A stretch of 63,117 bases of DNA, filler included, from Klebsormidium nitens (lineage: Eukaryota; Plantae; Klebsormidiophyceae), in NCBI GenBank assembly GCA_000708835.1. It is 6 parts of 6 records of this genome, joined end to end, with 100 filler letters (N's around TTAATTAATTAA, not from the genome) between each part and the next. Parts side by side here need not be neighbours in the genome. Positions count along the whole stretch, not along the records: positions 58,170 to 60,908 come from DF238646.1; 5 more parts are not named here. The stretch is one strand, 5' to 3'. Positions within the stretch are counted from its first letter, which is position 1. Each line of letters begins with the position of its first letter. Under the pieces are notes generated by a model. The model saw only the letters and a list, made by a program, of their open reading frames with translations. It was not told the DNA's origin and made no database searches. Shown here piece by piece: positions 5,701-60,908 of this stretch. Made by a program: the position numbers and the translations under genes.

Positions 5701-8377
5701 CTGGCATCCCGAACTATAGTCCCACTCAATCACATTTACTTATGGAAAGGCTGATATCAAAAGGACTTTGGCCTCTGAGGTTTTGCAAATGGTTTTGCAC
5801 GAGAGATGATTGGGCACCAGTTCGAATTTAGGAGGACCCGAGATCTGGAAAAAATCGAGACTATTCTAGGTGCCCACCTGCGTCCGTCTTCCAGAGAAGG
5901 CTGCGCTGTGTGTCCGTGATATACACCTCTCCCGTCGCGGCGTCAACAGCGGAGTCGTTGGCAAAGATCGGCAGATTCACGGGAGGGGTTTCCACCGGCA
6001 CGTCTGAGAGCTTGGTCAAAAACTGGCGCTTGCCGCTGAAAATGAGGAGTATGAGGTTCAGGTTAAGTTGGTCTCGCTTTGTATAAGGTCAGTGACGGGT
6101 TGGAGTTAGCCTGGGGGTGTCGGGTTGGTTTCGCTGGGTTGCGCCGTATCACGCACGCTTTACTTTGGTGCTGGCAGTACTGCTCCCAGTTCCAAACGTG
6201 GATCCCAACCTGGCTCGGTTGCACCCGAGATAGGGACTTCTCTGGATTACGAGCGAGAAGGAGGGGCAAAGACTCTGCCAAACGATGGTCGTGTCATTTT
6301 AAGCCTGGAGATTGTGCAAACGCTAAGAGATGCCGTTCAGCTGATGTGATCATAGGGAAACTCAAACCCTCTGGCTATGACACGGAAATTAGCTGGCGCG
6401 TGGTTGCATGTTTTATGCTGTCGTATGGAGTTGCCTCCGTACGGAACATTCCGTTCCGCTCCAATCCCTTCCGTTCCATTATATGGACCTGCAGGAAAGA
6501 GTCTGACCCTCTTGGCCATGCTTGGATATCCTTCCAGCCTTTCTTTGTCCGCTCCACTCATCTTTCCGTCCTCAATAAGAACACGGGTCAGAAGAGACTC
6601 GGAGTGAACAGAGCACAGAGGACAAGATACGCCGAACTTTAACGTATACGTATCAAGGCACGTTGCTCAGGGTTGATGATCGAGTTTCGCAAAGGGATCG
6701 AGGCGCTTGAAGCAATGCTTCGAGAGTGATTTCTGCCCTGGAGGAGCCAGATTTTCTGGTCTTATTGGGACCTCAGATTTTTACAGGCGAAATCTTTCTT
6801 GATTGCATCTAGGACTAGGGGCCTATCAATGAATTGGCTTTAAACAGTCTATGTAGCAAGGAACTCTTCTAGCCTCTGTAAGAGGCGGATTTTTTTAAAG
6901 CCACTGTGACGACTTTTACAGCTGGCACAACATCACCAAACAAAGCTCTCCAAAATGAAGTTTCCAACTGGGACATGCACATGGTCGGGTGTGACCACCG
7001 AATCAGCTGCCATATGGACCGGCCCATAATAGCACAGCTACCGGGCGTCTTCCCCGCTCAGTATCTCACGCTGCCAGCTTTTGCGAGCTGTAATCGCTGG
7101 TCGCATGTCAAGTTACATCATGAACCCCCTCTCTCAGTGTTTAAATTGGCATGAGACACACTTAACAGCAGGTGTCTCAAGGGGCCATTCCCAAGCGGCA
7201 GTGACACGCGCGTAGAAGGAATATCAAAGGCACTTTTGATGTGACCAAGGAGCACAGGCCCTGGGCCCTGTGTGTTAGTTACGAGTCCTCAGATAGCCAG
7301 AAATATTGATTGTCTGCCATTCACCTGTCAAGGTCATACGCGGCCACTCCATCATAAGGCGCCGCCGGGTTATTGCTGTGCACAGTCACGACGAAGCGGT
7401 TCCTGGGCAAGTCAACTTGGAGACCCAAAGTTGCGCACCCGGAATACTCTTCATCCTACAGCAGTGTTGACAGGTACTTTGGCCAATTGTGTCAGACTTG
7501 CTATCAGATCTCTAGTGCTGTGCTATGCTTGATGATAATTTCTGAGTTTATCATTCTAGACCATGCCCAGCATTTGACAGCAGCTCAGCATTGCAGACCA
7601 CAACAAGGAGAGATACAATTCGAACTCTGAACAGGCAGATCTGAAGCAACCAGCTGGAAGTCCTCATTTTGAGTTAATGAGGTGAGAAAGCAGGTAATCC
7701 TGAGCAGGGATGCTTTCTCTGGCCCTCCAGGTGGCTTGAGAATGTGCTGGCAGATTTTGGAAGATAATGAAAGGTGTATTTAGCTGCTAGTCACCAACCA
7801 ACACTGGAATCCTTTCCCTTCTATGCATCTAGCGGCATCCAAAAGGAGACAGAAGTCAGCTGCTAATGAATGAGTAGCAAGCAGATAAATTGGAAAGGGC
7901 TCTCGCATGATTAGGTCCAATGGCTTTCGATACTGACGAGGGATCTGATTTTTGCCTCTTCCCTTGCTCCAGTGAGAAATAGAATGCGGCATTCATCCCC
8001 ATCAAACTCCTGTGAATTTCACCACAGGGACCATCAGATCCTCTTGATTAAACCTCATACGGGGCAGACTCTTTGTCTTGCGCAGCCAGCTTGTTCACCC
8101 TGTGAGGAGAAGGAGGCTGCAGGGAATGATTGATGACACGCGCAAGCAAAAAGCCATGTAAAATTTAATCTGAGAATTAAAAGAAACATAGGCGCACCAG
8201 CACCTGCTTGCTCACCTTGACAACTTCCTTTGTGGTACCATCAGGATAAATCGCCAGGATGTTTCCCTTCAGCACTGATCCTACAAGGAAGCGCCCATTC
8301 TTTGCATCCCAGTCAATGCCTTCCGGAAATTGCTGCGGCGAATTGTAGACGACCTTGTCTTGAACCTGCGCCGCCAT
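2794..8377 (-). CDS. SMP-30/gluconolactonase/LRE-like six-bladed beta-propeller protein (calcium-dependent phosphotriesterase superfamily), 6 exons, 307 aa from the Met at 8377
   Basis: Exons 8377-8216, 7455-7325, 6035-5878, 5157-5003, 4061-3885 and 2934-2794, all GT-AG with consistent phases (924 nt). Family motifs: FPEGIDWD, LGLQVD.PRNR, FANDSAVD..GEVYITD, GLNGLVVH.DG, GADGIRF.PDG, TTAVAIRDGRAY. An additional upstream exon is possible (acceptor-like CCCACAG just 5' of the ATG). Confidence 0.9.
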
Positions 8378-8718: not shown

Positions 8719-11700
8719 GTTCGTTCGCAAATGCGCGCCTCAATGGTTTTAAAACGATAATTGCCGGCAAAAACACATATCATATCCTACAAGCTGGACT
8801 CTGTAAAAGATCAAAAGGTTTCAGCTGATCCAGTTTGCTGAGTACGTCTGCAGGGTTTGTAGCAGTTGATCAATGTTTGTTATGAATGGCCCGCAGAAAC
8901 ATCATGCAGAACGGGTGCAGAACTGATACTATACTAATCCCATTCTAATCAACTGATTGTGCGGAAGAGACTCAAGAACTTGCAGTGATAACAAGCGGTA
9001 CTATGCATCGACTGGCAGTATTCACGCAATGAGTCAGCCTGCAACTTTTGCGCTGGGCCGTGAATTAATTCCTTTGAGATATTTCCAAGATCGAAGAAGT
9101 GACGTTGGCCGGCCGCGATTCCCCGGACGGCACAGCTGTGAGCACTAGGGCTGGGAGCTTGCCGCTGCTGCCCCCCCTGCTGCCGCGCCAGATCCTTCAG
9201 GCTGCCAGGAGCGACGCAGCGATGTCTGCTTCATATGCGCGCAGCGGACTGGCACGATGACACAATTGGAATTGGGCCAGCTTGAATAGACAGGGACAAA
9301 AAGTCCGGTTCAAGCCGCCCGCGGTGATCCGGTTGAAGCTGATGGGCCAGCTTGCGCTTTGAGACTGGTCCAGCAGTCCCTTCCGCCGGAGGATCTGGTC
9401 CGAGCCTGCAATTCCAATGTGTCATCGTGCTAGTCCGCGTCGAATTTGCCAGATTTGAGGCGTCGGCTCTGGCTACGTTTTGAGGGCCCAAGAGGCTAGA
9501 GAGATCCCCGGCCGGTTGAGATTTACCACCAGATGGAGCACGAAACGAGCCCATTAGCCGACTCGGACAACTGGAGGAATGGGCGTTTTGGGAGTATATG
9601 TTTCCTTTCAAACAGGTCACCACGATTGATGAATTAGTGATACACATGGGCTTCACTGCTAGCTCCGGACGAAGGAGGATTTGTCTGCGGCACTTTGTGG
9701 TGATTCGGTCTCCGGCAGGTCAAAGTTCCGGGATTCAAACGAGCCGTCACCGTTCGCTCCCGACTCCCCTGAAAACCGGCGTCGAATCCATCAAGCTGCT
9801 TGCTACGGGACGCGTTTCAGGATTCGCTTTCGAATCCGCCCTCATTGTCACAGAAACTCTCTTTCGCCCCTAGAAGCTTTGGTCTTCCCTTTTGCCCCAC
9901 GCGAGCCCCGCCCACAGCGGTCCTTGGGGGCGGAATTCGTAACGGCTGACGTGCAACGGAGAGCTTTGTCCGTTAATTGCTGACGCGAGCGGCGCTGGTC
10001 GATACCAGGGTCCTGCCTGCTTTCCGTGTCTTCCATTTCATTTCACAGCTCGTCCCCCCTTCAAATGAGCGACATGACGGCCGGCATCAAAACTTTCAAA
10101 AAAGTAATAGCTAGCGGCATGCTCGAATGTACTAGACCTGCCTGCTGTTATGGTGACAAGTGCGAAGCTGCCACGTGGCTCTATTAGCGACCTCGCTGCC
10201 TGCAGCTCCGTGCCTCCGTCCCTTCCGTTCGATTCGAAAAAGTTGCTGGAAGCTGAGGAAAAAACCAGTGGGCTCAAAGCCTAATCCGAGTCACGTGATT
10301 CACCTAAGATGAGATGCTCACAGGAGTGGGGATGCACTGAGGAGGCTGCAACCGGTTTATCACGGTCCGTTGCTTTGGGTTACTACTTTTTGGATTCGGA
10401 CAGTCGAAAGACTGGAAGGCCGACAGAAGGATTCCACTTGCTCCAACAATTGCTGTTCCGGTCTTCTCCTTCGAGGCAGGAAGTGCGGCAAAGGACGAGG
10501 ACTTGATTTGACGACGAGTGCGTCAGAGAGGATGGTAAGGCGGCTAAGAACCAAAAGAAGCGCTCTCACTGCTAAAGAAGTAGGGAGGGGGATCGAATAG
10601 AACAACGAAAGATGCGGGTTTGAAAGGCCGGGCACAAAGTCCTTGCACCATTCAAAGATGATTAGCATCCTCATCGTTTTCATCTAATTTGTACACAGTT
10701 TAAAGAACACAAGTCGGAAAAGTTTCATCCTCGGAAAACGCGGCTGCAGAGGCGGGGCCTGCTAAACGCTTCTGTGCGAGGTTTAGCGGAGACGGAAACA
10801 TGGGTCCACTCAAGGCCGCTGCGCGTGCGACTTTCTGGATAACACAGGCCGGAAGCTCTGGTCTGGATGGATTAGAGTTAGATGCAAAATATGCATGTCA
10901 TCATGAGTTGGCTCGCTGACGTCACTGTCAGCTTGGTTGCTGCGCTGATCCCACGCCAGTGGTCGATCGTCGCGCCAATTTGAAAAGTTAGCAGGGACGG
11001 TACGGAGGCGGCCGCCAAGCGACCGAACTCCCTGGGGGGGGCGAGGGATTGGGGTTCCGCGGCAGAAGAATGGCAGAAATGGTCGCCAGACCCGGATCCT
11101 TGGGGATCAAGAGGGGGAGGATGGGGCATTTCTAGGGTATCAGCCGAGGAAGTGGCCCGAGGACGTTCGATCGTTCTGGGCGGCGCTCGTCACGCAACGA
11201 TCGACGGCCAGCCACGCATCAATTGGTCGGTAGAAAATTCTGTACGCGCTTGCGGGGCGCTTAGCGAACATGGCAAGTTTCGTCTTGAAGAGACCAGCGG
11301 TTTCCATTTGAGACGCACGAAACGCCCCGGACTGGGGCGCGCTTGGCTTTCGTGAGCGCCCTGTGTCCGTCTTTGTGTCGATTGATTTCGCAAGTCCGCA
11401 GAGGGATCGACAGGGCTCTCTTGAGAGATTGGCGACCCTCCGCCCGCACGCCGCCGCTGGCGAGATTGGCGAAATTGGCGTCAGCAACGGCGCACGAGGC
11501 GCCGGGTGGATCGAAGTCCTTCAAGGGCGGCCCTGCGGGAGCCTGGGGTCGGTCTGGAGCGTCTGATTAATGAAGTGGCGCATGGGGCGTCCGCCAGGCA
11601 GGGGCTGAGATCTGGCTCCCACCGAGACATAACATTTCTAACTTACTGAGATACTGAGTGCTCCGTCAGTTGTACCCAATGGCTCCCAAGGGACCGGTCA

Positions 11701-13024: not shown

Positions 13025-13601
13025 ATAATAAATGATTGAAAATCCAAATAGTGTCGGTGTGCGGCATTGCAAGGCGGCATCAAAGCAATGTCACAAGGCC
13101 GAGTCTTCTCGGCGATGAGCTAAACCATGCATGTTTTCCAGAGCGCTCGTCCGCGCCGCATCCATCATCCTGCATTCCACACCCCTATAAGTACTATCCC
13201 CTATAGCTATATAGCCGATGCCACACACCCGCCAGCCTGTTGCCAAGCTGGCGGCCACTCCCCTTCCCCTTCAGGCCACCATGGCCAACCCCCAATATTA
13301 AAGCAGGCTGCGCGGTACTGCATGGCACGTGATTGTTACAGCTGGTAACGGTTAAAGTGGGCGTTGGGATATAAAACCGGTAGTTCCAAGGCCGACCCGG
13401 AACCCGCTCAATTCACCGTGGCTCAGGTAGCTACACCCGGGTAACCCGGATGACGTGGCAACTCCGACGGGTTGTGATCACAAAACTTTATGGTTATCGA
13501 AGAGACCTAACCCAATTGAAAGTAAACACTATATAATCTAAAATAAACCCTGAATGCGCTAGCATTTGCGCCAATGTTGTGCCTTTAACGCTTTTGCCCT
13601 C

Positions 13602-13687
13602 GCCGTAGTCCGTAGGGAGCTAGAGCGTTCGAGCGCCTAGCGCGGGGTCGAGGGTTCGATTCCCACCTTTTGCAACTTTTTTTTTTT
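13602..13687 (+). ncRNA. Degenerate tRNA-like / SINE-head cassette with a Pol III terminator-like T run
   Basis: A-box-like TAGTCCGTAGGGAGCTAGAGCG, B box GGTTCGATTCC at 13653-13663, T11 at 13677-13687. Acceptor and anticodon stems pair poorly, so it is not a functional tRNA. Confidence 0.45.
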
Positions 13688-58169: not shown

Positions 58170-58354
58170 CTAGCGATCAGGTTTGAGTTCCCAGTGTTAC
58201 TCTTCGCGGCATTGAAGCCCAAAAATATGTTCTGAGTGCCACCCGCATCCACGCCCGTGCCCTGCCCTACCGCGACCGAAGTGCCGGTCGAATCTGTGAC
58301 GTACGAGGACGACGAGGACGCGCCCAGACGGCCGGTGAACGGCAGGCTCGACAT
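58170..58354 (-). CDS. N-terminus of a Gly/Asn/Thr-rich beta-repeat protein resembling large-DNA-virus fibre or surface proteins; truncated by the contig edge
   Basis: ATG at 58354; VAVGQGTGVDAGGTQNIFLGFNAAKSNTGNSN fits the N.F.G..A...NTG..N repeat style. Only ~60 aa are visible. Confidence 0.45.
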
Positions 58355-58516
58355 CTCTTCTACGGGACTTCCTCCGAACCGGAGCTAAGGTCTAGGATCG
58401 ACTTTAAAAATGCACCTCGAGACGCACGCCCTCGCCCCCTCGCGACGGGCATAAGGAAGCGGCCACATCAACGTGGACCACCCTATCAAGCCCCCCCTTA
58501 AGGAGGACCTTTAGCG

Positions 58517-59899
58517 ATGAAAGACGCAGGCAGTAAGCCTAAGCGTAGAATATGCGTCCATGACGACTGTACTAACGGAGTGGAAGCGAAAGGCTTGTGC
58601 AAGAGGCATGGCGGCGGTCGCAGATGTCAACACCCATGGTGCGGCAAGTCCTCCGTCAGCGCAGCCAACTTCTGTTCCAAGCACGGCGGAGGGCGACGAT
58701 GTCAAGCCCCAAAATGCAACAAAGGCGCGATAGGAAAAACCATATTTTGCAAGGGACACGGCGGGGGGGCCCGGTGTCGGAAGACAGAATGCAGCAAGGC
58801 TGCAATTGGACCGTCCGACTTATGCAGAGATCACGGAGGCGGACGGCGATGTCATGATGCCGAATGTAACAAGCTTGCGCAAGGGTCCACAAACTTCTGC
58901 ATCAAACACGGAGGCGGTCGGCGCTGTCAGGAGCCAGGATGTGATAAGTCGGCGATAAGCACAACCAACCTGTGTTACAATCATGGGGGCGGCAGGAGGT
59001 GCGCTGGAGTCGACTGCCATAAGTCCGCGCAGGGAGGAACGTCTTTTTGTAAGCAACATGGTGGTGGCAGGCGGTGCCAGGAGAGCGGCTGCAGCACGTT
59101 GGCGGTCATACGTTGTACCAGACACGGAGGCGGGCGGCGGTGTGAGGAGGCTGGATGCGATAGTGGCGCTGTAAAAGCGACACGATTTTGCAGATTGCAC
59201 GGAGGTGGTAGGCGATGCAAGGAAAACGGATGCGATAAGGGCGCAGAAGGGGCAACGGATCGTTGCATCAAGCACGGCGGCGGCAAGCGGTGCCGGGAGG
59301 CCGGGTGCGACAAAGGGGCCCGAGGATCAACCTTCTGCAAGAAGCACGGGGGGGGGCGTCGTTGCTGCGTATGCTCTGAGGTCTCTGTGCATTTTGAAGG
59401 CGCCGCCTGCTACACGTGCCGGTCCGGTACCTCGCTCAAACAGTGGGAGGTATACACGACCAGGTGGTTGACGCAGCTGGGCTGGGCATGGTCTTACTGC
59501 GATCAGCAACTCCCTTGCGCCCGGAACCTGGCGACGCAAAGCACTTCGTGCATCACACGCCCCGACTACGTCTTCGTGTTTCAAACACATGTCGTCATAT
59601 TGGAAGTTGACGAGTCCTACCATCGTTACTATGCCGTCGAGTGCGAGGTCGACCGCATTGGCAAAATTAAGGATGTTTTAAAGGTGCCGCTTCATCTTGT
59701 GCGCTTCAATCCTTCAAAGGGACGCTACAACCTACTCGAGAACATTATGCGAACCCTATTTCTTGACCACGAGAGCGCGCAGAATGAGGCCGGGGTACTG
59801 CTTCATTTCATAGGCTATCCGGAGGAAAGGATCTTGGAATTGGAGGACGAGTCGGAGTTCTGCTACCAGTATAGAAAGATAGCAGGAGTAGAAGTGTAG
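58517..59899 (+). CDS. Intronless 460-aa protein: 11 tandem C-x4-C-x7/10-C-x2-H-GGG(R/K/A)R (WRKY19-type) repeats, a CxxC...CxxC motif and a C-terminal PD-(D/E)XK-like endonuclease domain
   Basis: Single open frame from ATG to TAG. Repeats counted directly. C-terminal RPDYVF.....VILEVDE..H..Y..ECE..RI.......P...VRFNP resembles the restriction-like nuclease domains common in nucleocytoviruses. Confidence 0.85.
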   Translation: MKDAGSKPKRRICVHDDCTNGVEAKGLCKRHGGGRRCQHPWCGKSSVSAANFCSKHGGGRRCQAPKCNKGAIGKTIFCKGHGGGARCRKTECSKAAIGPSDLCRDHGGGRRCHDAECNKLAQGSTNFCIKHGGGRRCQEPGCDKSAISTTNLCYNHGGGRRCAGVDCHKSAQGGTSFCKQHGGGRRCQESGCSTLAVIRCTRHGGGRRCEEAGCDSGAVKATRFCRLHGGGRRCKENGCDKGAEGATDRCIKHGGGKRCREAGCDKGARGSTFCKKHGGGRRCCVCSEVSVHFEGAACYTCRSGTSLKQWEVYTTRWLTQLGWAWSYCDQQLPCARNLATQSTSCITRPDYVFVFQTHVVILEVDESYHRYYAVECEVDRIGKIKDVLKVPLHLVRFNPSKGRYNLLENIMRTLFLDHESAQNEAGVLLHFIGYPEERILELEDESEFCYQYRKIAGVEV

Positions 59900-60143
59900 G
59901 AGTGTAATCCAGCAAAGGCGTAGTTGATGCTTTCTAACCTAAACATTACGCTTGCTGAACCATGTATGCCGTCTCTTGCTGAGGCGCCTTGTCTTTCATG
60001 CGAACGATGTATGCATCGAGTGCTGCATTTGTGAGAGCTAAATTTCTCAGACAAATAATGACCCACATGAGCATTCGGATGTTTTAACAAGTAGATTCGC
60101 GTTCTGATCTGACAAATAAATCTGCAACTAGTTCTACCTGAGC

Positions 60144-60908
60144 ATGCCTAGTCTCTATGAGAGCCCGCTCTACAGAGCCACCATCGCGGAGTTCATGGGC
60201 AGCGGCCTCTTCCTCTTCACCGTCATCACCACCGCCGTCAACTACCCCGCCGATCAGGCCCTAGGGGGCGCGAACCTGCTAGCCCCGATCGGAGTGGCCA
60301 CCGTGTTCGGCGTCACCATCAGCACCCTCGCATACACTTTCGGAGACGTGAGCGGAGCGCACTTGAATCCGGCCGTGACCCTGGGCTTCCTCGTCCGAAA
60401 GAGCATCGAGCCGACCCGAGCAGCTCTGTACGTCACCGCTCAGCTTCTGGGAGCCATCAACGGAGCGTGCCTCGCCCGTCTCGTCAGTGATTGGGACCTC
60501 TACGACGCAGGCGGCAGGGGCGTCAACTACGTGACGCACGGCCACGCCCTGTGGCAGGCCCTCTTCGCCGAGATCGTCGCCACGGCCTTCCTCGTCACCG
60601 TCGTCCTCCACGTATCATACCTGGCCACCAAGCAATACGGGCACGGGCCGCTCGCGATCGGCGGCGCCGTCCTCGTCTGTCACCTCGCGCTCATCCCCAT
60701 CACCGGAACGTCGATCAATCCCGCGAGGTCCATCGGGGCCGCCGTCGCGTCCGGCAGCAACGCCCACCACCAATGGTCTCAGATCTGGATCTTTCTAGCC
60801 GGGCCTCTCGTCGGAGGTGCGATGGCGGGTCTCAATCCCCTATGGGACGACCGAGCTCGAACGGAGGCAGATCTACCCCAGCCCACGCCCGCGCCGGGTC
60901 TCGCCGCC
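60144..60908 (+). CDS. Intronless aquaporin (MIP family, PIP-like); last residues lost at the contig edge
   Basis: Two NPA motifs (SGAHLNPAVT and GTSINPARS), PIP-like YRATIAEF and HLALIPITGT, and WIFLAGP. ar/R residues F, H, T, R by manual alignment to plant PIPs. Confidence 0.92.

Follow-up and report, generated by a model that had tools for sequence, protein, structure and literature searches.

Modular homing nucleases with a Vsr-like domain are known, and the closest described counterpart of the gene that is analysed here is I-Bth0305I, the EDxHD enzyme (3R3P; PMC3239194), in which an N-terminal DNA-binding region precedes a C-terminal Vsr-like catalytic domain. Vsr-like homing endonucleases have also been reported in mirusvirus introns. 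The gene lies on the plus strand (58517..59899, stop codon included) of a 63,117-nucleotide stretch of DNA from Klebsormidium nitens (GCA_000708835.1), hereafter the window, which consists of six parts of the assembly joined by filler; the part that bears the nuclease gene covers positions 58170-60908 and comes from DF238646.1. Its intact open reading frame (ORF) begins with ATG, has no interruption and encodes a protein of 460 amino acids (aa) that combines 11 Cys3His repeats with a predicted nuclease domain. With moderate confidence, we interpret it as a free-standing homing-type site-specific endonuclease gene of a giant virus (Nucleocytoviricota) or of giant-virus DNA that was endogenised in a Klebsormidium-like green alga. 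The window protein shares the two-part layout of I-Bth0305I as well as a glutamate in helix 1, an aspartate at the start of a strand, an acidic residue at the position of Vsr F62, a histidine and a later acidic residue, and a mobile-element lifestyle is likewise suggested for its gene. However, the gene for I-Bth0305I lies in a group I intron and the enzyme contacts DNA through NUMOD and helix-turn-helix elements, whereas the window gene stands free in an intergenic cassette and its protein has 11 Cys3His repeats and a CxxC...CxxC ribbon. Moreover, the histidine of the window domain follows the aspartate by four residues, as in DUF559, and not by five, and there is no significant sequence similarity between the window domain and I-Bth0305I.

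The free-standing homing genes of the T-even phages (Seg and Mob; intronless homing) encode GIY-YIG or HNH enzymes, and their homing was shown by crosses. The window gene resembles them in that nuclease genes of different families occupy the same intergenic site between conserved genes and frequently decay. It differs from them in that homing of the phage enzymes is proven by crosses, while for the window it is deduced from comparisons alone. The window gene, which has its own start and stop, was not found to reside in an intron or intein, although no RNA-family intron search was made; such residence is not obligatory for free-standing homing genes. The architecture also recalls the engineered zinc-finger nucleases (ZFNs) and transcription activator-like effector nucleases (TALENs), in which tandem small repeats with a fixed frame and variable surface residues are joined to a separate cleavage domain of the restriction superfamily. 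Unlike these, the window protein is natural, its finger type is different and its nuclease is Vsr-like rather than FokI.

The repeats of the window protein are of the Zf_WRKY19 type (PF24906), which, like the EsV-1-7 type (PF19114), is built of Cys-x4-Cys...Cys-x2-His units and linked to giant viruses. The EsV-1-7 motif was published as a possible new class of zinc finger with a link to giant viruses, and it stands alone of Pfam domains in the Ectocarpus proteins. Hundreds of genes with EsV-1-7 repeats are present in each brown-algal genome, including the developmental regulator IMM. These brown-algal proteins were reported without another Pfam domain or a known biochemical function, whereas sister proteins of the window protein carry EsV-1-7 repeats on the same nuclease domain, one of them at the same K. 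nitens site. No paper on the fusion of EsV-1-7 repeats to a nuclease was found in the literature searched, in which neither an 11-unit WRKY19-type Cys3His array on a Vsr-like nuclease, nor a family-wide exchange of repeat arrays, nor a site at which nuclease cassettes are swapped has been described.

The homing interpretation draws on the genomic context of the gene. To the left of the gene, the first 61 codons of a divergent gene (58171..58354, minus strand), which is cut by the edge of the piece, represent a conserved neighbour; its start is 79-82% identical at the amino acid level to a 640-aa gene in the related contigs L014, L015 and L017 (tblastn), which has a weak match to Glyco_hydro_49 below the cut-off. 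A conserved non-coding flank (58355..58462) is followed by a variable cassette of approximately 1.63 kb (58463..60096, plus strand), which holds the nuclease gene and short 5' and 3' non-coding parts. The conserved right neighbour is a MIP/aquaporin gene (60144..60908, plus strand; 255 codons to the piece edge; Pfam MIP, E 1.6e-56), and it was through proteins 95% identical to this aquaporin that the contigs sharing both flanks were reached. These 255-aa proteins are encoded on metagenome contigs, and a partial match of 97% identity is present in K. nitens. The ratio of non-synonymous to synonymous polymorphism (pN/pS) of the aquaporin against L014 was approximately 0.22, which signifies purifying selection.

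Between these collinear flanks, different sequences replace each other at a fixed site. In L014 and L015 (90-94% nucleotide identity), the matches to positions 58172-58494 and 59679-60907 are only 8 nt apart (blastn). The segment missing from both (58495..59678; blastn, alignment A5) extends from 22 nt upstream of the ATG to approximately codon 387, so that the deletion takes in the promoter-proximal part, all of the array and the catalytic half (codons 1-387), and only the last 70 codons are left as a remnant. In L016 (approximately 73% identity), the similarity ends at 58461 and restarts at 60097, with a 2.07-kb cassette between that encodes a 458-aa T5orf172 protein (PF10544, 23.2 bits, cut-off 20) and a 137-aa ORF. 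In L017, which is itself a K. nitens record (DF238441.1; 89-96% identity), the similarity ends at 58464 and restarts at 60143. Its cassette of approximately 2.05 kb codes for EsV-1-7 repeats (E 1.8e-15) that are joined to a nuclease domain from the same family as that of the window protein (hhalign probability 97.9%, E 6e-13). The conserved left flank gives way at about 58461-58464, beyond which neither L016 nor L017 matches any further (blastn, alignment A5). Loose read ends were detected at 58461 (DNA runs X1 and X5) and before 60143 (X1), and because those of X1 are the junction sequences of L017, the DNA of one organism contains the window form as well as that of L017.

Decay was also observed among the paralogues of the gene. 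Frameshifts break up the copy in L007, an in-frame stop interrupts the first repeat of the one in L002, and P0008 has kept a single repeat. Furthermore, the L002 gene is flanked on both sides by the last 77 codons of the upstream helicase, in two diverged copies (66% amino acid identity, E 6e-31, 1821 nt apart). This is the pattern that is left when an invading endonuclease gene brings a foreign 3' end of its target with it, and it can be regarded as an indirect sign of homing. The preliminary description of this DNA had left the choice between a homing, a restriction and a host-DNA-degrading enzyme; homing fits the context best, because of the alternative cassettes at one site, the deletion remnant, the broken copies and the one duplicated 3' end of a target gene, while the other two roles fit less well. 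Under the homing interpretation, the basic N-terminal array of 11 Cys3His modules, each probably holding one zinc, would bind a long DNA site. The C-terminal zinc ribbon and the Vsr/DUF559-like domain (E311, D350, E363-x-D365, H369, E377) would then cut the DNA in a reaction that uses a divalent metal ion. When the break is repaired from a genome that bears the cassette, the approximately 1.6-kb cassette would be copied between the upstream gene and the aquaporin gene by gene conversion.

Several of these features would also suit a nuclease of genomic conflict, which would degrade host DNA or cleave the genomes of rival viruses or virophages, the array guiding it to non-self sites. The family is multi-copy, large and specific to viruses, its putative catalytic residues show conservation, and the gene, like many conflict genes, is accessory and variable. 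We consider such a role unlikely, since no match to the known defence-system models of PADLOC was obtained, no partner methylase or immunity gene lies beside the gene in the window, and homing cassettes are the more typical setting for nuclease genes that swap at one intergenic site and for the duplication of a neighbouring gene's 3' end.

The repeat array (aa 13-282; 58553..59362, plus strand) was characterised by the PF24906 match, a regular-expression scan, its composition and a variability analysis. The scan of the ORF protein revealed 11 consecutive units of 22-25 aa (aa 13-36, 37-61, 62-86, 87-111, 112-136, 137-161, 162-186, 187-208, 209-233, 234-258 and 259-282), all with the frame C-x4-C-x7-10-C-x2-H-G-G-G-x-R, and the array contains exactly 33 cysteines, three per unit. 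The match to the Zf_WRKY19 family hidden Markov model covers 10 stretches (Pfam scan; E 4.4e-52), and its score of 173.9 bits against a cut-off of 27 is far beyond chance; the window protein has no match to EsV_1_7_cys (PF19114) at E <= 1. The 11 modular units that were claimed in the preliminary description are thus confirmed, and all of the strings that it quoted from between the cysteines (KSSVSAA, KGAIGKT, KAAIGPS, KLAQGST, KSAISTT, KSAQGGT, KGAEGAT and KGARGS) were recovered. The CxxC..CxxC and RPD...ILEVDE..H motifs that it listed could also be placed, at C283/C286/C298/C301, 348-350 (RPD) and 361-369 (ILEVDE..H). At the DNA level, the array is a 75-nt periodic family with units that are only 61-82% identical, which indicates that it is old and diverged and was not recently amplified; it was not reported by Tandem Repeats Finder. 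The array is basic (isoelectric point, pI, 9.5; 53 K+R in 270 aa), and the nuclease part is acidic (pI 5.4). A comparison of the array alone with the solved structures in the PDB gave no match, and an exact look-up of the 460-aa protein returned no record.

The array is followed by the CxxC...CxxC element (59363..59419, plus strand), a putative zinc ribbon before the nuclease core that over a local stretch weakly resembles the zinc ribbon of L37e, and by the Vsr/DUF559-like PD-(D/E)xK nuclease domain (aa 302-460; 59420..59896, plus strand), which was delimited using an AlphaFold2 (AF2) model, structural neighbours, conservation and local hhalign comparisons. The putative active-site codons are E311 (59447), D350 (59564), E363 (59603), D365 (59609), H369 (59621) and E377 (59645). 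In an alignment (A4) of 89 relatives that are 25-66% identical to the window protein, C298, D350, E363, D365, R380 and R396 are invariant and C283, E311, C301, C334, E366, H369, C376, E377 and P399 are at least 90% conserved, while C286 is a majority cysteine in the consensus only. The catalytic pattern of the PD-(D/E)xK enzymes is present, with D350 at the start of the second core strand and the acidic/His motif E363-x-D365...H369 in the next one. The confidence of the AF2 model (predicted local distance difference test, pLDDT) was 78 with a 12-sequence alignment and 89.9 with the 89-sequence alignment (predicted template modelling score, pTM, 0.81). The latter model has an alpha-beta-beta-beta-alpha-beta core (elements H25-40, E70-73, E78-83, H93-106, E111-116 and H120-135), and the AlphaFold check that had been proposed for the nuclease part accordingly returned a restriction-endonuclease-like fold.

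The nearest structures in the PDB (VIA-align) were NGO0050/DUF559 (3hrl; Z 8.0, root-mean-square deviation (rmsd) 2.8, 90/94 residues), the I-Bth0305I catalytic domain (3r3p; Z 7.8, rmsd 3.2, 95/98 residues) and Vsr (1cw0; Z 7.2). The same three headed the list for the earlier, shallower AF2 model, and the lower neighbours included RAP domains, Bax1, Can2, PspGI, VRR-NUC and Hjc; most neighbours at Z >= 5 are PD-(D/E)xK nucleases. The PD...h-h-E-x-D-x-x-x-H and RF/NP motifs of the window domain resemble the signature of DUF559 (NGO0050, 3HRL; Escherichia coli YcjD), and residues 19-54 of Vsr (1CW0) align with the helix-1 glutamate and the RPDF motif. With single-sequence templates, hhalign placed E25 and D51 of Vsr on E311 and D350 (probability 18.7%) and the E-L-D-G-G-Q-H motif of YcjD on E363...H369 (probability 2.5%). 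The positions thus aligned are those of the EDxHD active site (PMC3239194). The model supports the placement of the predicted domain in the Vsr/DUF559/EDxHD branch of the PD-(D/E)xK superfamily, with the canonical lysine replaced (E-x-D...H). In contrast to the window protein, the DUF559 and Vsr proteins are bacterial single-domain proteins, Vsr being a T:G mismatch nickase, and the modelled window domain has in addition a beta-alpha-beta extension at its C-terminal end and a putative zinc ribbon at its N-terminal end. The ZFN-like two-part architecture that was proposed earlier is therefore borne out by the Zf_WRKY19 array and the modelled nuclease domain. The assignment to PD-(D/E)xK held for the fold and the active-site pattern, as judged from the AF2 model and conservation, but not for membership by sequence statistics.

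The best rows of a Foldseek search, which were not significant, were the restriction-like endonuclease (RLE) of the R2 retrotransposon (E 6.7e-3) and PspGI. R2 has a Cys-rich zinc motif just before its PD-(D/E)xK domain as well as N-terminal zinc fingers. The window protein differs from it in having no reverse transcriptase, and the TM-scores were low (0.33). Metallo-beta-lactamase rows that were obtained with the first model were rejected because they were gone with the better one, and a match of the C-terminal 180 aa to blaEFM was noise (13.7 bits against a cut-off of 610).

The RAP domains among the structural neighbours (FASTKD4 and mitoribosomal RAP proteins, Z 6.6) raise the question of an RNA-directed protein that would process viral or host transcripts, since Cys3His fingers and RAP-type Vsr-like domains often bind RNA. 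RNA-binding fingers of this kind have the spacing C-x8-C-x5-C-x3-H. The array spacing, C-x4-C-x10-C-x2-H, is different, DNA nucleases outscore the RAP domains structurally and in the genomes the gene behaves like a cassette that is mobile at the DNA level, which makes an action on RNA the least probable of the roles that we considered, and a highly improbable one.

The family to which the nuclease domain belongs is large and almost confined to Nucleocytoviricota. Twelve close homologues are 54-69% identical in the C-terminal part, two of which are annotated as 'hypothetical virus protein' in Klebsormidium nitens. A profile of the close homologues retrieved 1501 cluster representatives at E <= 1e-3 from a library of 1.84 billion proteins, nearly all of them with the pattern P/A-D-aromatic ... 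h-h-L-E-V-D-E-x-x-H. The ESM-Atlas clusters with the nuclease fold are 88-100% viral, mostly Nucleocytoviricota; one has 1703 members, and those with WRKY19 fingers, EsV-1-7 repeats and C2H2 fingers have 79, 55, and 55 and 106 members, respectively. This agrees with the earlier statement that the nuclease motif is common in giant viruses. A Pfam scan of the N-terminal parts of 136 relatives detected EsV_1_7_cys in 32 and Zf_WRKY19 in 12, while a few have C2H2, MerR or HNH_3 domains and one has Hjc. These varied N-termini show that the nuclease domain is a module that giant viruses combine with different N-termini of DNA-binding type. Pattern matches to alignment A2 in viral and metagenome contigs were not confirmed as relatives, and they have no bearing on absence.

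At some eight different sites, homologues are found in the midst of genes of the nucleocytoplasmic large DNA viruses (PCNA, VLTF3, A22, capsid, D5 and Prim-Pol). In K. nitens, one homologue is accompanied by PCNA, a UvrD helicase and OTU (L001) and another by VLTF3, an A22-like gene and a protein kinase (L004, DF237661.1), while the contexts elsewhere are capsid and VLTF3 (L005), dNK, Prim-Pol and D5 (L007) and ribonucleotide reductase (L011). That one homologue lies directly downstream of VLTF3 could point to a DNA-binding regulator or repair factor, i.e., a viral transcription factor that has kept a nuclease-like fold, or a mismatch-nicking enzyme of the Vsr type. Vsr is a repair nickase, DUF559 proteins have no known function, and EsV-1-7 proteins such as IMM have been discussed as developmental regulators. 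Nevertheless, this explanation is very unlikely. The apparent fusion P0005 (657 aa; VLTF3, zinc fingers and nuclease) is a spliced gene-model artefact and was rejected, because in L004 the VLTF3 ORF (9187..10242, 351 aa) is separate from the zinc-finger nuclease ORF (10349..11584, 411 aa). Decay by frameshift, stop and deletion and a variable position are unlike a core regulator or repair gene, and the near-invariance of five acidic or His positions, to judge by the alignment, argues for probable catalysis over binding alone.

The question of whether the repeats follow a recognition code was approached using 153 within-array repeat pairs from five genes. The frame positions C1, C6, C17, H20, G21-23 and R25 change almost exclusively synonymously. 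Non-synonymous change peaks at position 11 (79% of the within-array pairs, and 90% in the most homogenised array, L002), which is followed by positions 4 (75%), 18 (69%), 2, 9, 7, 13 and 15. Within the loop between the second and third cysteines, the odd positions 7, 9, 11, 13 and 15 are variable and the even positions 8, 10, 12, 14 and 16 are conserved. Such an alternation with a period of two is in keeping with an extended loop or hairpin of which one face is exposed and evolves fast, and it would be compatible with a recognition surface without being proof of one. The variation in repeat number that was to be looked for among homologues does exist (from 1 to 12 repeats). The expected positional hypervariability was seen only in part: the odd loop positions do vary, with position 11 highest, but about eight positions are involved and the loop does not clearly exceed positions 4 and 18.

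A stricter version of the homing interpretation would see the protein as a programmable array nuclease, in which, as in TALE or C2H2 fingers, a small set of hypervariable residues lets each repeat read a fixed number of bases and the array is re-targeted when repeats are changed or shuffled. The range of repeat numbers, the nearly invariant frame against non-synonymous differences at positions 7, 9, 11, 13 and 15 plus 2, 4 and 18, the maximum at position 11 and the occurrence of the same nuclease domain on EsV-1-7 and C2H2 arrays are all in line with it. However, the same pattern is expected on any solvent-exposed face, and nearly every non-frame position differs between the repeats of the window's own array. 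Since the variation extends over about eight positions with a period of two instead of one or two code positions, the residue code for target specificity that was suggested in the preliminary description is so far unsupported, and a strict code of this kind seems doubtful.

Several observations weigh against the interpretation as a homing endonuclease. With regard to the domain, residues 282-460 have no match in Pfam, NCBIfam, PHROGs or PADLOC, and the C-terminal part did not match Pfam DUF559 or Vsr even at E 10. Phmmer and two profile searches against the PDB gave chance matches only (glutamate receptor, thioredoxin and L37e), and Foldseek against the PDB returned nothing at E <= 1e-3 with both models. 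A significant sequence or profile link to Vsr or DUF559 was not obtained, the hhalign probabilities being 2.5-19%, and a structural Z of 8 is middling by the tool's own scale. No DNA-binding data for the WRKY19/EsV-1-7 finger type were found in the literature. With regard to the locus, the flanking duplication was detected at one of the seven loci (none at L001, L004, L005, L007, L009 or L011), a truly empty site was not found among the related contigs, which have only the remnant and other cassettes, and the site could simply be a hypervariable island. Finally, none of the RNA runs contains the stretch at 58170-60908 and X19 yielded nothing, although this does not prove that the gene is silent.

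If the homing interpretation is true, a widespread virus-specific branch with more than 1500 sequence clusters would be added to the Vsr-like (EDxHD-type) homing nucleases, and its catalytic domain with interchangeable repeat arrays would be a natural counterpart of the ZFN build. It would also provide the first functional context for the WRKY19/EsV-1-7 cysteine repeats. Their repeated fusion to a DNA nuclease in mobile cassettes makes the idea that they are DNA-binding modules directly testable, and natural arrays with differing repeats are material for decoding specificity. The locus would, moreover, represent a hot spot in giant-virus or endogenous-virus genomes at which unrelated selfish nuclease genes replace each other. 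A much bolder and rather improbable extension is that the WRKY19/EsV-1-7 Cys3His repeat is a natural modular DNA-recognition unit whose loop positions 7, 9, 11, 13 and 15 read bases, that giant viruses re-target Vsr-like homing nucleases by repeat turnover, and that the orphan brown-algal EsV-1-7 proteins (thousands, including IMM) and the plant WRKY19 finger descend from viral nuclease arrays.

Some further observations concern the locus and its relatives. The DNA run X1 contains 24 variant contigs of the 58170-60908 stretch at >=99% identity and 26 at lower identity, which indicates that this locus is multi-copy or polymorphic in X1. Two runs with other organism labels hold pieces that are up to approximately 98% alike (e.g., 3 differences in 196 letters), and small shares of the stretch are present in freshwater and moss metagenomes. 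The first 13 codons (MDLTA.ILAHPRV) are common to the L016 gene for T5orf172 and the L017 gene for the EsV-1-7 nuclease; positions 5978-6015 of L016 and 411-448 of L017 are 84% identical over 38 nt and the remainder of each gene is unrelated, which suggests that the two have a 5' leader in common or that a recombination joint lies within the start of the ORF. The window aquaporin has a giant-virus context, and a second MIP gene, which is 41% identical and lies beside the L002 paralogue, looks frameshifted.

In the JGI samples 3300060284/3300060285, four contigs of one metagenome (L002, L005, L007 and L009) have one paralogue each, and the states of these paralogues are intact, with an in-frame stop in the first repeat, frameshifted and with a single repeat, which indicates a multi-copy family in one virus population. 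In L002, an inverted repeat of at least 270 nt (7624-7905 and 13298-13637; 132-nt arms of 93% identity in the first scan, longer by tblastn) brackets a block of approximately 5.5 kb with the helicase, the zinc-finger nuclease paralogue, the orphan helicase 3' end and the MIP gene; the block may be a rearrangement or a larger mobile unit. The Atlas clusters for residues 1-285 included WRKY19-type finger clusters with Oomycota labels, consistent with the earlier statement that such repeats occur in oomycetes. Diatom Atlas clusters combined the WRKY19-type finger with the CxC6 motif of KDZ transposases; with scores below 0.9, this co-occurrence serves as a lead only to another link of this finger type to mobile DNA.

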